DNA of 64,000 nucleotides from Guillardia theta CCMP2712 (Eukaryota; Protista; Cryptophyta): positions 562,968-626,967 of the forward strand of contig NW_005434649.1 of NCBI RefSeq assembly GCF_000315625.1, in the 5' to 3' direction. The translations under genes and the position numbers were made by a program. Shown here in pieces: positions 16,811-25,964 of this stretch (the stretch's first letter is position 1; each line of letters starts with the position of its first letter). The notes beneath the pieces were generated by a model. It did not search any database, was not told the origin of the DNA, and was given only the letters and a program-made list of their open reading frames with translations.

Positions 16811-17563
16811 ACCGTACCGGGACTAGCTTACCTTGACATCCTCCTCCTCCTCCTCCTCCTCCTCCTCCTCCTCCTTGAAGCTGCTTCACGGCTCTCTAGC
16901 TCGCTGGTGATAAGACCCTTGCCAGTCAAACATCCAGAAATACAACCACGGGTCCTAGCAAGTTCATAGGAAGAAATCTTCCTTTCATAGCACTACTCTC
17001 TTAGTAAGGTCCTAGCAGACATTCTATCATCGAAGTAGGACCTCTTCCTAAGACCCTGTCATAGTAGCATATCCGAGTCATCTCTTGTGCTCCGGGGCGG
17101 GCCCGGAGAGCGAGCTGTTGATGAGGCGGACTTGCCGATTGAAATGTTGAGTATCGTCCATCGCGACCTCCACAATGCATCTCCTTCGTTGCTGCAGCGT
17201 TGCCGCTCAATGTTGGGGAGCATGGGAGTCACGATCCGTCGATTCCATGCTCCATGCTCCATGCTCCTTACCCCATGCTCAATCATCCATCATCCGTCCT
17301 CGCTTCCCTCCTTCCACTCGTATTCTACTGTTGTATCCTCATTTTTCTTGTATTTCTTGCCTTGTCAACCTCTCTCCTTCTCTCCCTATTGGCTGAGTGG
17401 ATCTGCTGCACATCCTTTTCCTCATGAGGTCTCAGGGTTGGGGATCTTAGAGTTTTATTATTTCCCTTCTCCTTTGGGATTCAGGTCTTTGAAAGAATCT
17501 TCCTTGCCCGTTGATGCCTAGTATCTGGTGTGCTTGCTTCTCACTCCTTCATTTACAGGAGGA

Positions 17564-19487
17564 ATGATGTCCTCTCTCCTCGTCGCCGACATCAAATCGT
17601 TCCTGAACAAGCACCGCACGAAGATTATTGCTTGCGCAGTAGGGGGGACCATGTTGTTGTTGTGGAACTCAGGGCGGCTCTTTCCGAGTGATGACGATCT
17701 TGTGAAGTTTGTGAGACGAGAAATGGAGGAGGAGAAGCAGAAGAAGGAGAAAGAGGAAGGGAAGGAGGAGAAGGAGGAGAAGTACACAGAGGAGGAGGAC
17801 GATGATTTCGAGTTCCTCAGCAGATCCTTGATAGATGGAGACGGGCATGCAGCGTTCTGCCTGGAGCTGAAGAGGATCCGATCGAAGTTGACGCAGTTCT
17901 TCGACCTTGAAAGCCTCAGGGTGAAAGTTCAGGAGGCAGACAAGCTCCACCACCAGAATCGCTTCCTCTTCAGAAGGATGCTTGTCACCAGCAGCATCGC
18001 CAGGACCATCGCTGCTGTCTACTGCGTATGCGTAGCGAGAACCCTGATGCACTGCAAGCTCCTGCTCCTGCGGAGAGAGCACAACCTCACTCAGACGTCC
18101 TTGTCCTCCTTTCTTGGGCTGGACCAGGACAGCAATCACTTCCTGTCTATCCGCTGGGCCGACTCGATCTGCCAGGTGGTGCAGGAGGGAGTAGAGACTG
18201 CGTTCAAGGGTCTCTCAGACGAGCGTCTCCTCAAGTCGAGCATGGATGTGCAGGAGGTAGTGGGCAAGGTGAAGCAGTCCATCCTTGTGGCGGCCGAGCG
18301 GAAGGGATGGGGGACCGGGCTGATCCGAACTCCGTCCCCCCTCGAGAGGGAGCTGGGAGGAGGATGGCTGGGGCGACTACTGCTGGCGGACAACCGGTGG
18401 AGGATGAAGGAAGGCGAGCGGGGAGCTGGAGTATGCGACTTGGAGTGCTGGATTGTGGAGGAGCAAGTCGAGCAGCTTAACTCAAACCTTGCCCTGGTAG
18501 CTTAACTCTAACCTTGTTCTGCTCTTCCTCTCCCCGTTCATTCTCCCTCCCTCTTTCCTCCCTGAATAATCTTCAGGGCGCTCCATCTCCTTCTTCCTCT
18601 GTGTGTTCCTTCGCATTCCTCCCTCCGCACTGTTCCCGGTTGTCGCCTTCTTCCTTCCTTTCTCCTTCCCCATTTCTTCTCTCCTCTGACTTCCAAGACC
18701 ATCAGATGATAGGAGGGCATGGCTTTGACAGTTCGGCGAGTGGGGCGATCGACGTGGGGCTGGACTTGCTGACGAAGCAGGTGAGTGGATTTGAGGGTCG
18801 AGCAAGGAGGGAGCTGACGAGGCGACAGATTTCAACTCGGTTGAGCGCTGGGCATCCTGCTAGGGATATGAAGGGAGAGGAAGCCACACCGGTACCTGCC
18901 TCACCATTCTTCATGTTTGCCTCAGTCTTTCGACCTCCGTCCCCTCCTCCCTTCCTCCTCCTCCTCCCCATTCTGTTCCTCATCCTAACCCTCCTGCTTT
19001 AGTCGAGATCCTCCGACTCAGTCCCGTCAACGCCACAGGGCCACTTCTCCCTGCCTCCTTCGGTGAGCAGCCGGGCCTGGGAGGAGGAGGTGTTGACTTT
19101 CTGACGCAAGAACTCCTCCTCGTCGCTCGCCCATCCTATCACAAAGATCGTCCCAGTGATCTCAAACCAGTTTCTTGCCATTCTTTGCACCCGTAAGTTA
19201 CGATCCCTTCACTGTTCCTCCATTCTCACGCAGTCGGTCCCATCAGCATCGGAAAAATCTCCTTTCAGCAAGATTTTTTGCCCTCCTCCGCGGTATTTAC
19301 TCATCCTCTCACGCTGCCTCCCCAGCATCTTTGCGTTCTCAGCTTCATAACTTCGCTCCTCGATTCCTCCTTCCTCTCTGCACCAATTCGTTTTCTTCGC
19401 CTCTCCTCCGATGCCCTCCCTCCCGCTTTTTGGAGCTTAGATTTCAGCAGGAACATTCGCAATGCAATGTACAAGATCGAGATCTGA
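17564..19487 (+). CDS. PEX3: Peroxin-3
   Basis: N-terminal FLNKHRTK followed by a TM helix; RTIAAVYCVCVARTLMHCKLLLL and ITKIVPVISNQ match Pex3 conserved helices. 3' exons are approximate. Confidence 0.75.
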
Positions 19488-19590
19488 TGTACATAGACCG
19501 ACGAGACTCCTGGGTCTCTCCTTATCATGAGCTTGTGCCACTGCCTCCCACACCTTTCTCCTTCCCTGCCTGAATTCCTGCAATCTCCTC

Positions 19591-19722
19591 CCTTCCTTGC
19601 CCTTCCCTTCCCTTCCCTTCCCTTCCCTTCCCTTCTCGTCCCTTCCCTTCCCTTCCCTTCCCGTCCCGTCCCTTCCCTTCCCTTCCCGTCCCTTCCCGTC
19701 TCCGCTCGGCTCGGCTCGGCTC
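19591..19722. repeat. (CCCTT)n / (CTCGG)n pentamer microsatellite
   Basis: Seen directly. Confidence 0.9.
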
Positions 19723-20005
19723 GACTTCTCTTCAAAAGAAAATGCAAAGTTGCAAGTTAAGATCTACAGTCTCAATTGGTTGAACATCAGCAAACATTCG
19801 TGAATGGATGGTTCGACTCAAGGAGACATCTTTTTTTTTTACGCATGCTTCGCTCCTTCACACATGAACCAACAAGATCTTGAACTCTCAACATGTCTTG
19901 GTGACATGCTAGAAACAGATCATTACACCCACGAGGGACCGGATGTTGCCGGGCAATGAGATGATGCAGATGCGACGAGGGCTTTCAATTCATTCCATCA
20001 ACTCA

Positions 20006-21229
20006 TCAACTCTCCTTCGGCGTTCTTTGCTTCCTGTTCTTCTTTTTCAGCGACAGTCCTTCTCCTTTCACTGATGTTTTCTCCTTTAGTTTCCCCTCCT
20101 TCTTGCCAAGAGATTTCTTCTCAAGTCTGTTGGTGGTAGCGACGTCAGCAGCATGTTCCGAAAGTTTCTCTCCCCTGTCGTCTCCTTCCTCAACCATTCC
20201 TTCTTCTGCATCTCCCTCACTTTCTCCTCCCTCCCTGCCGTCTCCTTGATCCGCACCATGAAGAACTTGCATGCTCAATTCAACGTAGCTCGTCGTGTTC
20301 CCGTCAATCACTGTCACGTTTCTCTTCATCAGCTCGCTGTAGTCTGCGAAGACAGTGCCCGAGTCTCCTCCGTCCTCCTCCTCCCCCCTCTTGCCTCCCT
20401 CCTGCTACCGGGGAAGCACATCAGCGTAACGGCCCTGCCCACAAGCATGCTCCTTCACCGTGTCTTCCCAAGCAGCCGCCTTCAACTTGAGGAACTCGTC
20501 GATGGTCACTAGCTCATCATGATCGCTGGAGTAAAGAGGAACGTCTGACGTAGTGGGACTGATAGCAAGCTTTCAGAACCTCCACGGACTCTTCGCTTCT
20601 CAACAGCCTCACCCTCTTGCCTTCCTGAACAGGTACGACCTGAAGAGCTCTTGGGGAAGTGCGTCCCCCTCGAAGTCCATGCCGTCTGGAGGAAGACGCG
20701 TCATCCTCTCTTTCCTGATCTCCTACGACACGATGAGAGGTTGGGAGGAGGACAGAGCTGTCGACCTCGAGGAGGAGAGGGTCGAAGAGGCCATGGCGCT
20801 CTTTCCAGGCCGCTCTCTGCCTGTCAACACTCCTCACTTGCAGAGCAACTCTCAACATGCACCTCATCCTCACACCTGCAGAACTCGAGATCACCTGCTT
20901 CACAGCTTAGGTCCTGAACAAGAGACGAGGAGGGTTGCCAACGAACTTGGATGGAACGGGGGAGGGTGCGCGGGGTATGTCGGGAAGCCATTCGGATCGA
21001 TCTTCTTGGAGGTGTACACGCGGAACCCGAGCTCGTCCCTCCAGTACCTCAGCTTCAATCTCCTCTTGTTCTGGCCTTTGTTCTCCCCTGAATCCGCCCC
21101 TCCTCTCAAGCGCAGGCATTCGTTTCCTGCTACCCCTCCAGCCTCTGAGTGCACTGGGCTACAGACTGTGCTCGCCCCGAGCACAGCACAACAAGCGAGC
21201 AACACGAGTCGTACACGCATGTCACGCAT
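20006..21229 (-). CDS. Nop10 (H/ACA RNP subunit 3)-domain protein with signal peptide, LRLRGG motif and C-terminal extension
   Basis: LRYWRDELGFRVYTSKKIDPNGFPTYPAHPPPFHPS|DLEFCR|QRAAWKERHGLF matches the Nop10 pattern L.YY....G.RVYTLKK.DP.G..T.SAHPARFSPDD..SR.R...KKRFGL. N-terminus is MRVRLVLLACCAVLGASTVCS. 3' end is approximate. Confidence 0.8.
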
Positions 21230-21611
21230 TCTCCTTCTTCCCCTCCTCCTCCTCCTCCCCTCCTACTGGAACGCCGCCATGCTGCACTAGTCGCATCAGA
21301 GAGGCATTTCAAGTCCCCCTCAGTTCAAGAGGTCATCAAAAACAAGAGACAGCAGCTGGGACTTCGGTCTTGTTGCTGGTGCAGAACCATAGCGGGTCAA
21401 GTTCGCTGACTTCAGTGACTTGTAGTTAGCTCCAGCGAGGCCGGCCCGCAATGTCGAAGCTCCGAAACCGCCATAATCGGGGACCCCTATCCCCCTAGCC
21501 TAGCAGCACTTTTTCCACCTTGCTTGCCCTGGGCTTTTCTGCAGTCGGTAGGTGGGGTAGTCAATGCCATGATGGGACAAGAGGGGGTACCGTACTCCTG
21601 TCCGCGCCGCG

Positions 21612-23237
21612 ATGGCTACACCGCCAGGAAGCAAGCATGAAAGAAAGATTGACAATGAGCAGGACTTGAAGGATACAATGGACAGAGAGATCAATCTCGA
21701 CATCGCTGACAGCCTCCTCCAGACGTTGAGAAAGCAAGAAGACGGGCCTGCAAAGCCACTGGTGCTGTCGTCGTACAACAACAAGGGTGGGGTCTTGAAG
21801 ACAACCACTTGCGTCGAGGTAGGCTTTGCTCTGGCAGAGATGGGATTCAACATTCTGCTGGTGGATCTTGACTCTCAAGGCTCTCTCACAAAGTCCTTGT
21901 TGTACCTGGAGGATCCTGAGAAGGAAATAACATTCTCCAAGAGAATACGTGTCGGCGGCCCGAATGGAGATCGCTTGCCAGTGGAGGATGACAACGGCTT
22001 GCCGATCATCAGAGAGGTCTTGAACGGTCTGACTGAGATAGTCAACCCAGAGGATACCGACACTATGCCCAAGAAGCTGACTCCAGTCCTCATACAGGAA
22101 CAAGGGCAGCCTGAATTCCTAAACCCTGATCCCTCGATGCGAGAATCCAATCCCACCCTGATGAAGAAGTTCGAGAAGCGTCGATTCGATAAGGCCTGCA
22201 AGATACAGCACATCATCTCCAAGAAGCGCGGCAAGGCTCAGGGATCTGTACACCTTGTGATCGGGCACCACAACACCTCACAGATATCGAATCGAATTGC
22301 TGTCGCAAATCAGTTCGAGAACGACGCTAGCTACCAGAGGATTCATGGGAGCGTCAATTGGCTGATCAGACAGGCAGCACAGGATGTCAAGGCAGACATC
22401 GTGATGGTCGACTTGAATCCGGACTCAAGCCAACTCAATCAATGCGTCATCATGCAGTCCGATTACCTTCTGTTGTCCACCTGGCCGGATCCTGACGGCA
22501 TCGAGTGCATGGTTGACCTCAATTGCCGGCTGATTCAAGGATTGAGGTCACAAAAAGATGACAACTATGATTCCCAGGACGAATACTATATGAAGAATCG
22601 ACAAGCTTGGATCCAGATGCAGCAAGACCTGTACCATCGCACCAGAGAGAGGATTAAAGATGTCAACGCTCATCTGAGGGTTGGGCCGAACATGCCGACT
22701 CTTCTTGGAGTTGCTGTTCACTCCAAAGAGCCATACCGACACCTCCGGGAGTCCGAGCAAATCCTCTCTGACAAGATCTTCAAGAAATACAGAACCCTGC
22801 AGGAAGACCTTCAAGAGAACGTATGGGTATTTGTCAAGCATGGGTCGATCCACACCATACGCAAGCTGACGGCTCGTTCAGGAACTTCAGGTGGTGGCTG
22901 CGAGATGACTATCAACCATCCCAAGGCACAGCACTGCCTTGGAGGAATATGGAACCATCAGACGCTCAAGTCACTGAGCAAATCGCTGAGAAAGCCGATC
23001 GCCAACATTAACATCCGAGACCTTGCTGGCCGTGAGCCCTCGGAGGAGGAAGTGATTCTCAAGGAGGAGTACTCTTCTAAGAACATCGACGACGCCATGA
23101 TGCATATCGCTGAGCACAGAATTCGGATGCATCGCATCGCCCGGGCGATTCTTCACAACATCTCCTTGAGCTTGACCCAGATCAGGCCTGAATTCCGACA
23201 CGACTGGACCAGCCCGGAACTGCTGACCGTTGACTGA
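21612..23237 (+). CDS. Intronless ParA/Soj/MinD-family (SIMIBI) ATPase
   Basis: Deviant Walker A NNKGGVLKTT, Walker A' LLVDLDSQGSLT, Walker B VMVDLNP, followed by QSDYLLL. Confidence 0.85.
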   Translation: MATPPGSKHERKIDNEQDLKDTMDREINLDIADSLLQTLRKQEDGPAKPLVLSSYNNKGGVLKTTTCVEVGFALAEMGFNILLVDLDSQGSLTKSLLYLEDPEKEITFSKRIRVGGPNGDRLPVEDDNGLPIIREVLNGLTEIVNPEDTDTMPKKLTPVLIQEQGQPEFLNPDPSMRESNPTLMKKFEKRRFDKACKIQHIISKKRGKAQGSVHLVIGHHNTSQISNRIAVANQFENDASYQRIHGSVNWLIRQAAQDVKADIVMVDLNPDSSQLNQCVIMQSDYLLLSTWPDPDGIECMVDLNCRLIQGLRSQKDDNYDSQDEYYMKNRQAWIQMQQDLYHRTRERIKDVNAHLRVGPNMPTLLGVAVHSKEPYRHLRESEQILSDKIFKKYRTLQEDLQENVWVFVKHGSIHTIRKLTARSGTSGGGCEMTINHPKAQHCLGGIWNHQTLKSLSKSLRKPIANINIRDLAGREPSEEEVILKEEYSSKNIDDAMMHIAEHRIRMHRIARAILHNISLSLTQIRPEFRHDWTSPELLTVD

Positions 23238-23551
23238 CTGCGAAGGAGCCTGGCAGTCAGCCCGGCCGCGTGACACGCGGGGGGCCCGGCCCAAACCGTT
23301 GAAGTCGGGCTGATTAAATTTTTAGTTAAAATTTTAAGTAAAACTTTAATTTTCGAGCGAAACATGAGCCCGTCGGGGAAATGGCGGGAGGGAGGGAGGT
23401 GGCGGGAGGGAGGGAGGAGTTAGCAGGGAGGAGTTACGGATGGTATGAGGGGCAAGTAGGGAGGCGATTAACATCACTGACGCTGTGGGCCAGTCGCAAG
23501 GAGCGCACGAGCAGCTAGAGCGATGCCAGAGCTTGCGAGTCGGCGGTAGGG

Positions 23552-25964
23552 ATGGTCTACCACGAGGTGCTGTTTGCCCTGCTCGGGCATCCTGGATCGA
23601 TAGTCTGTGAAGCAGAGGTGCTTGACTTGCCATGTCCGACCGAGAATCGTCCTGAGTGGTTGACGCAGGATGAGAGCAACAAGGGCTACGTGGTCAACAA
23701 GCACGCCAAGTTCCTGGCGGACAGTGAAAAGGTGAAATGGGTAAGGACGAGAGGGGGGAAGGAGTTGACAGCTGGTGTGACAGGAGCTGCTCACTCGTAT
23801 CGCTGCGATAGGATACAACTACTCGGTGATCAACTCCTTCATCAAAGATGTACAGCAAAACATGGAGGAGGAAAAGCCCAAGGACGCGAATCACAAAGGG
23901 CTCTACTTGAGGGCGTTTGTTTCAGGGCTGAACGAGGTCTGGAGATGTCCGAGAGGGTCGGGGCAGTGCTGATGTTCGTGTACAGATGTTGGACGTGTAC
24001 CGGTCGACAGTGCTGCGGGTGGAGCAGGCCTTGATCGAGGACCCTGGCCTGTCGCTGACCTACTTGCTGTCGGAGGCTGCAGACTTTGAGATCTTGTTTC
24101 CCTACGTCAAGACGCTGATCCAAGACATCGGCAAGCTCAAATCCCACGGCTGCCAGATGCTCGACCTTGTCTCGAAGCACTCCTGCAGCGGCATCTCGGT
24201 TGTCCAGTATGCGCTGGAGAAGGTCCTTGGGAGGATGAACATCGTGCTCTACAGCCAAGTCAGCGCCTGGATGATCTATGGGATCCTCAGCGATCCCCAT
24301 GGGGAGTTTTTCATCTCCCCGAGGCAGAGGAGGGTGGAGGAGAGGCAGCTAACGGGAGGCACGAGCCACCAGAGGATGTCGGGGAAGCACCACGAGGACC
24401 AGCTGTTCGAGCTGAACCTCAGAATGAAGCCTGGAATCCTGTCAGCCGTCATGCTCGAGAAGATCTTGTTCTGTGGGGTGGCGATGAGGGTCCTGATGCA
24501 GCCCAACACTCGCCCCGAGGATCGGCCTGAGGCCGAGCAGATCGGCAGGTTCAACGGTCAGATGAAGGCGATCAGCAAGGAAGGCTCATTTCACCGTAAT
24601 AAGTTCGAGTCGCTAGTCGACGAGGTTCACCAGTACCTCTCCAAGCGCCTGTGGCGGCTGGTGGTGGAGCGGGCTCGGCTGCCGCTGCACTTCAAGGCCT
24701 TGAAGGACTACTTCTTGCTCGCCCGCGGGGACCTCTACCAGGCCTTCATCGAGAACACTAGGGGCCTCCTGTCCCTCCCTGCCTCTGACACCGCCGAGCA
24801 TGACGTGAACGAGCCGTTTAGGCGAGCAGCGCTGCTGAGCTATGCGGATGAGGACGAGATGTTTGCTCGAACGCGGCTGGTCATCGGGACCTTGCAAGAA
24901 CAAGAGAAGGTACAAGGGGACAAGGGGGAGCAAGGGGAAGAGGAAGGGCTTGACAAGCTGCGAATGGCCTACGATATGGAGTGGCCTCTCTCGACTCTGC
25001 TCTTCACACCGGAGGTCATGAAGCAGTATAACATCCTGTTCTCCTTCCTCCTCCGCGTCAAGCGCGCGCAGGCTGAACTGCAGTTCGCATGGCACCAGAC
25101 GCAGAGCGGGAGGTACGGGAGAGCCATCAGCAGCGTGCTACACAAGGCGTCGAGCTCGGGAAGACACATGGTGAACCTGTGGACGGTGAGAGCGGAGATG
25201 GCGTTTCTGGTCAACAACTTGCTCTACTACCTGCAGTGCGACGTGCTCGACGCGCAGTTCGAGATCGCAAGGAACGTGATCAGGTCCAGTGACGACTTCG
25301 AGACCATCCGAGCGGCGCACGTGACGTTCCTCGAGAGGATATCCTCTGACTGTCTGACGCGGAACAAGCTCGCATGGCAGACTGTCAACATCCTCCTGAA
25401 GATTGCGCTGAACTTCGCCCGACGTATGTCGCAGTGGAAGACGGTAGAGAAGGGGATCGTGTCTAGCGCAGAGAGCAGGCAGAAGTTCACACTGGGAGAG
25501 GCAGGAGTAGGAGGAGCTGAAGGTAATGGTGGGGTTGGGATAGGTGGGCTGTCCTACTTGGGATGTCCGATCACGGTGAATGGGGAGCTTAACGTCATCA
25601 CAAACTTCAGCGAGGAGGACAGGGAAGTGACTGTGTACAAGCCGCTCAAGACTTCAGTGTCAGGGGACATGGAGCCTTGTGCCGAGGACCTCATCGGAGC
25701 CCGATACTCCATCGAGGCTCCTTCAGTGACAGGAGAGGAGCTGTCGGAGATCAGGCTGAGGTTCCAACGCAACGCCCTCCTCCTTTTCACCGTCTTGAAG
25801 ACTTCACAAGCGCACACGACGCCAGTCCTCTCCCAGGTAAGATTCTGCGCTCTGCCCTCCACCTCCTTCGTGACTTTCCACCACTCCAGCTGCTCCTGCG
25901 GATGGACTACAATGGGTTCTTCGAGCAGAGCAAGGCCAAGTGGCAACAAACAACTTCCAGATGA
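23552..25964 (+). CDS. TUBGCP4: Gamma-tubulin complex component 4
   Basis: MVYHEVLFALLGHPG N-terminus; WMIYGIL.DPHGEFFI, LKDYFLLARGDLYQAF, NNLLYYLQCDVLDAQF; C-terminal LLLRMDYNGFF. Confidence 0.92.

Follow-up and report, generated by a model that had tools for sequence, protein, structure and literature searches.

The window, a 64,000-nucleotide stretch of the Guillardia theta CCMP2712 assembly (C25:562968-626967), carries a Nop10-like gene on the minus strand, whose initiator ATG was read from the sequence at 21229. The features of the gene are, in 5' to 3' order:

21158..21229, minus strand: signal-peptide-like N terminus (residues 1 to 24), with a basic n-region, a 12-residue hydrophobic core, and small residues last
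21116..21157, minus strand: variable leader spacer of 14 residues (25 to 38), with no aromatic residue at the likely cut
21098..21115, minus strand: LRLRGG box, equal to the last six residues of ubiquitin; its conserved core is LRGG
21059..21097, minus strand: post-box linker of 13 residues (45 to 57), ending in the basic cluster KRRLK
20947..21058, minus strand: Nop10 N-terminal domain (Pfam PF04135; LRYW..RVYT..DPNG..AHPPPFHP); exon 1 ends in phase 1 at 20947
20837..20946, minus strand: GT..AG intron 1 of 110 nt, matched in position and phase by the intron of two relatives (L005 and L006); acceptor AG at 20838-37
20766..20836, minus strand: exon 2, minimal extent, with the Nop10 C-terminal helix (RQRAAWKERHGL) and the beginning of an acidic tail
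20006..20765, minus strand: 3' part, with three readings that are based on frame and phase arithmetic and codon-usage scores

The signal peptide was predicted by a rule of thumb (charge, core, and c-region) and reaches a peak hydrophobicity of 3.22 over 10 residues; by this rule it would be cleavable, as in a periplastid-type leader. The residue following the predicted signal peptide would be Thr or Pro, and none is aromatic at any plausible cut. A preliminary description of this DNA had proposed a signal peptide with no Phe at its cleavage site, followed by a short spacer and LRLRGG, and these elements stand. The spacer is poorly conserved, even in comparison with Hanusia phi. The KRRLK cluster after the box is possibly a nuclear import signal that would help entry into the nucleomorph.

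The Pfam Nop10p match covers the N-terminal two thirds of the family model, at 21058-20948, and exon 1 scored alone, as a single exon, reached 23.5 and 24.1 bits against a gathering cutoff of 27.2. An in-frame stop lies just 5' of the ATG at 21229, the stretch from leader to domain contains no Met at all, and a Leu occupies the position at which canonical Nop10 has its initiator Met; therefore, the Nop10 domain is not translatable without the leader. The upstream region of about 380 bp is common to this gene and to its divergent neighbor, an intronless gene for a ParA/MinD-type ATPase of 541 residues (21612-23237, plus strand).

Exon 1 ends at a GT donor at 20946-45. The contigs of three relatives (L005 to L007) have a clear second exon for the Nop10 C-terminal helix, and an HMM was built from the second exons of the relatives and the C termini of canonical Nop10. 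When run against all 45 frame pieces of 19900-21300, it picked a single one, the minus-strand frame 1 stretch RQRAAWKERHGL, with an E value of 0.003. The acceptor at 20838-37 turns the split codon into Met, and the exon beginning at 20836 aligns without gaps to exon 2 of the relatives and to canonical Nop10 (alignment A3). R, K, and R are invariant in this alignment, and the exon has the SRxRxxxKKRFG-like basic helix with which the family ends. In G. theta and the relatives alike, exactly five residues separate the FxP motif from RQR, and the exon 2 frame has its codon-usage peak at 20820-20790. Given the ungapped exon 2, the helix, and the FxP-RQR spacing, the Nop10 domain is complete in two exons; thus, the completeness claimed in the preliminary description was upheld, while its three exons were reduced to two. 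An alternative exon 2 starting at 20685 in frame 2 was rejected, since the HMM based on the relatives chose the frame 1 stretch at 20836.

Downstream of exon 2, three readings fit equally well. The exon 2 frame may run on to a stop at 20519-20517, which would give a two-exon gene; further splicing may lead into frame 2 exons at about 20685-20613, 20525-20409, and 20336-20009; or these frame 2 exons may constitute a separate downstream gene. Frame 2 has the higher codon-usage score at 20550-20300 and can be reached via several phase-compatible splices. The long charged extension to 20006, as first proposed, is thus unsupported as stated; it would need putative splices, and the sequence fits equally well if the gene stops at 20517 after two exons or if another gene lies downstream. 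No Pfam families were found in the frames downstream of exon 2, an Atlas look-up of 20408-20572 gave matches at chance level only, and no Rfam RNA families were found within 17000-24000. A second HGLRGG is present at 20675 on the minus strand in the exon 2 frame; it is probably due to chance and matters only under the two-exon model. An imperfect (CCCTT)n microsatellite is located at 19590-19700, just past the possible 3' end of the gene.

The host Nop10 and the leader-bearing relatives

A search of the 87-Mb assembly of 669 contigs recovered a second Nop10 on contig C93, which has two exons, scores above the Pfam cutoff, begins directly at Met, and is leaderless. The Nop10-like gene in the window is therefore an extra, divergent paralogue.

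The closest named relative, found by word search, is a transcript fragment of the sister genus Hanusia (Hanusia phi) that is 63% identical and contains part of the leader, the LRGG, and the domain together, with intron 1 retained. A profile search of 1.84 billion representatives and a second word search yielded about 13 more relatives from metagenomes and public run assemblies, and the relatives carry precomputed PF04135 matches. Those with a complete N terminus share the same order of elements, a hydrophobic start followed by a variable region, [LI][RK]GG, and a Nop10 domain of the LRY[WY] subtype. Among these complete members, the box reads LRGG except for one LKGG and one IRGG, and its distance to the domain ranges from 4 to 31 residues. 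In the family alignment (A2), the conserved columns are confined to the box and the Nop10 motifs, with RVYT, DPxGxPT, and the HPxxFSP-like linker invariant or nearly so. The canonical HPxRFSP linker has a conserved arginine that G. theta and Hanusia replace by Pro; several relatives carry Arg or Lys at this position, and others carry Asn, Asp, or Ser. The weaker matches of the leader-bearing family profile are canonical Nop10 proteins of animals and fungi.

On the contig of one group of relatives, the Rpn9 protein is 69% identical to that of Hemiselmis rufescens, 60% to that of Goniomonas avonlea, and <50% to all others, and the relative on this contig is therefore a cryptophyte. In the cryptophyte relative at L007:3710-3775 and L008, the conserved donor position has no GT, and FSPDD is restored only via a GC-AG intron.

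These comparisons bear on whether the gene is a decaying Nop10 duplicate preceded by a chance open frame. The 3' end, with its several models, and the G. theta copy, which is among the most derived, are what could be expected of such a remnant. However, the frame is intact, the splice sites are intact at a conserved position, the identity to the Hanusia transcript includes the leader, and the leader-bearing form is conserved family-wide across cryptophytes, so that we regard decay as highly improbable. The Nop10 family provides clean comparative evidence of constraint on LRGG within periplastid leaders.

The LRLRGG box across the genome

A degenerate DNA pattern for LRLRGG occurs 353 times in the genome, versus 255 times for the backwards DNA control and 193 times for the reversed peptide, and a lone occurrence is unremarkable. 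A true LRLRGG is encoded at 44 of the first 60 pattern matches, and GGRLRL is surely encoded at 20 of 100 matches of the reversed pattern. For 40 true sites and 20 reversed controls, we searched for a Met and a hydrophobic start located 15 to 90 residues upstream. Both shared an open frame with the motif at 25 of the 40 LRLRGG sites and at none of the 20 GGRLRL sites (Fisher test, 8e-7); with a stricter threshold the numbers were 19 of 40 and 0 of 20. The preliminary description had suggested that RLRGG-type motifs recur in such leaders and had proposed counting LRLRGG together with signal peptides; the recurrence is supported both by the family-wide box and by this genome-wide link. Kept across the whole family and tied to signal-peptide-like starts throughout the genome, the LRGG box goes beyond chance. 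The residues that follow GG are unconstrained at the LRLRGG sites.

One of the other genes is of the eEF1A type (C3:1064834-1065750, minus strand); it has a signal peptide and a spacer, and its LRLRGG abuts the conserved N terminus, GKEK. At this site (C3:1065284) the Pfam GTP_EFTU match begins at profile position 1. An RPS12-like paralogue (C9:685865-688969, match at C9:687365-687469, plus strand) is preceded by an open frame that encodes a clear signal peptide together with LILRGG and an acidic stretch rich in Glu and Gly, and the host RPS12 on C160 is without such a leader. Signal peptide and LRLRGG also occur together in a gene with a weak match to Rad54_N (L044, C6:598994-599910) and in another with a weak match to the starch-binding module CBM_20 (L058, C12:493205-494121), cryptophyte starch being located in the periplastid compartment. 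One more LRLRGG gene has a methyltransferase domain. The other box-bearing genes, including the eEF1A, RPS12-like, and Nhp2-like (see below) genes, are of the nucleo-cytosolic housekeeping kind, and the leader of the Nop10 paralogue is of a type present on translation and DNA-metabolism proteins. We read the LRGG-ended leader as a bipartite targeting signal in a new form. In an incomplete literature collection, no paper was found that pairs LRGG or RLRGG with periplastid, cryptophyte, Guillardia, transit peptide, or nucleomorph.

Candidate H/ACA partners and predicted destination

Cbf5 is encoded by each of the four cryptophyte nucleomorph genomes sequenced, and Nop10, Nhp2, and Gar1 by none of them (PMC6461891), so that the check on a nucleomorph nop10 proposed at the outset gives absence, with Cbf5 as the sole H/ACA protein there. 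The same study, published in 2019 and devoted to nucleomorph small RNAs, judged it uncertain whether pseudouridylation takes place in the cryptophyte nucleomorph; no H/ACA guide RNAs were known from nucleomorphs, and the Nhp2, Gar1, and Nop10 genes then known from the G. theta nucleus were without targeting peptides. A single DKCLD locus was found in the assembly, which does not include the nucleomorph Cbf5 sequence.

A candidate for a second imported H/ACA subunit is a gene on C40 with a divergent Nhp2-like exon (C40:369398-372496, match at C40:370898-370996, plus strand), which scores 117 with the host Nhp2 on C52 versus 63 with Snu13. It has ARLRGG some 880 nt upstream, within an open frame, with a weak, Ala/Met-rich hydrophobic start, and the host Nhp2 on C52 is leaderless. 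A second, leader-bearing Gar1 was not found in the G. theta genome. A further Gar1-domain locus (C9:930419, L011, C9:928919-932107) was considered for this role and set aside; with an acidic, serine-rich upstream region, it looks Naf1-like (an H/ACA assembly factor). With no leader-bearing Gar1 and no known guide RNAs, the nucleomorph particle could lack some of its parts, work without guides, or depend on imported RNAs.

We consider it likely that this is a nuclear G. theta gene for a divergent Nop10 paralogue with a bipartite leader, which is imported into the nucleomorph and partners the Cbf5 encoded there. That the host nucleus supplies Nop10 for a secretory or periplastid route, as the preliminary description had it, gains indirect support from the separate leaderless Nop10, from the nucleomorphs with Cbf5 only, and from a domain that is untranslatable without its leader. 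Targeting to the periplastid compartment or the nucleomorph is well supported, if indirectly. The paralogue would enter the ER via its signal peptide, cross into the periplastid compartment (the relict cytoplasm of the endosymbiont) by the ERAD-derived SELMA route, shed its leader at the LRGG box or close by, and then enter the nucleomorph, where it would join Cbf5 in an H/ACA-type particle for pseudouridine synthesis and rRNA processing. So placed, the leader-bearing Nop10 is best seen as a member of a known family that would fill an expected, previously empty role.

A different destination would have the protein act in the secretory pathway, the ER, or the plastid stroma, with a Nop10-like fold reused for a task unrelated to H/ACA particles. 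The divergence of the paralogue, with exon 1 below the Pfam cutoff and the linker arginine lost, is compatible with such a change of function, as is the missing leader-bearing Gar1 partner. However, conservation within the family is highest in the motifs that face Cbf5 (RVYT, DPxGxPT, HPxxFxP, and RQRxxxKxRHG), the same leader type is found on eEF1A and a ribosomal protein, neither of which has a role in the ER or stroma, and the aromatic residue of stromal proteins is missing after the signal peptide. We consider this destination improbable. Under the preferred reading, import into the nucleomorph, a Nop10 with a leader conserved across cryptophytes, together with a candidate Nhp2 partner, argues that the nucleomorph Cbf5 is no orphan, and the two proteins make the question of nucleomorph pseudouridylation testable.

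Possible leader processing and comparison with known systems

Some cleavage at or adjacent to the LRGG box is probable, and it is plausible, if a little short of probable, that a ubiquitin-type protease makes a cut after GG. Both deubiquitinases and viral papain-like proteases cleave LxGG, and the tail that a deubiquitinase substrate presents is found here as LRLRGG at 21115-21098 and family-wide. Most deubiquitinases need the ubiquitin fold for binding; only about 14 residues separate the signal peptide from the box, and no ubiquitin-like fold precedes the tail. Judging from the eEF1A case, the mature protein would begin after GG.

Two proteins come into consideration as ubiquitin-type proteases for the right compartment, with a putative role in leader removal. 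One is the diatom periplastid deubiquitinase ptDUP, which is reported to be absent from cryptophytes (PMC12412216). The other is a nucleomorph-encoded zinc-finger protein with a Ufm1-specific-peptidase domain and no assigned role (Gt2_270 and its orthologues), which each of the four cryptophyte nucleomorph genomes sequenced has retained (PMC6559170). A ubiquitin-type cysteine protease would be the simplest guess for the leader peptidase.

The targeting may be right and the box may still serve another purpose, either as a SELMA recognition or hand-over signal that mimics a ubiquitin tail for Cdc48 cofactors or a ligase, or as the site of an unrelated peptidase. Conservation of the box at a variable distance from the domain is what any short linear motif would give, and the lack of a ubiquitin fold before it and the reported loss of ptDUP in cryptophytes point the same way. 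A cut site, however, fits best with the conserved N terminus of eEF1A immediately after GG, and the unconstrained residues that follow GG resemble those at ubiquitin-fusion cut sites. We hold this alternative use of the box to be rather unlikely.

Returning to a cut after GG, the most far-reaching proposal is that LRGG is the long-missing processing site of cryptophyte periplastid-resident proteins, where a cysteine protease of the ubiquitin type that resides in the endosymbiont compartment makes the cut (the nucleomorph protein with the Ufm1-specific-peptidase domain being a candidate), and that the nucleomorph runs an H/ACA particle made of its own Cbf5 and imported subunits. We put this forward as tentative and, taken as a whole, doubtful. 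If it were true, ubiquitin-dependent import and leader removal would share one chemistry, and the Nop10 paralogue and the Nhp2-like protein on C40 would show a nucleomorph particle for H/ACA pseudouridylation and rRNA processing, against the view in the literature that it has no such machinery.

Compared with Nop10 (PF04135), the paralogue has the same two-part domain of about 55 residues, with the N-terminal ribbon motifs, the HPxxFxP linker, and the basic C-terminal helix. It differs in about 57 extra N-terminal residues and some C-terminal tail, in a KRRLK cluster that canonical Nop10 does not have, and in the replacement of the HPxRFSP linker arginine by proline; unlike in the host copy on C93, its intron lies five codons further downstream. 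The box invites comparison with the tails of ubiquitin (LRLRGG) and NEDD8 (LALRGG), as the G. theta hexapeptide is identical to that of ubiquitin and the relatives have ALRGG, RLRGG, and SLRGG; in contrast to those tails, the motif is internal to a targeting leader and follows no ubiquitin fold. The bipartite signals of cryptophyte periplastid proteins combine a signal peptide with a transit-peptide-like region that has no aromatic residue at +1 (Gould et al. 2006, cited in PMC6461891). With them the leader shares a signal peptide, a short variable region, no Phe at the junction, and a passenger whose function belongs in the endosymbiont cytoplasm or nucleus, while, unlike them, it ends in a conserved LRGG box.
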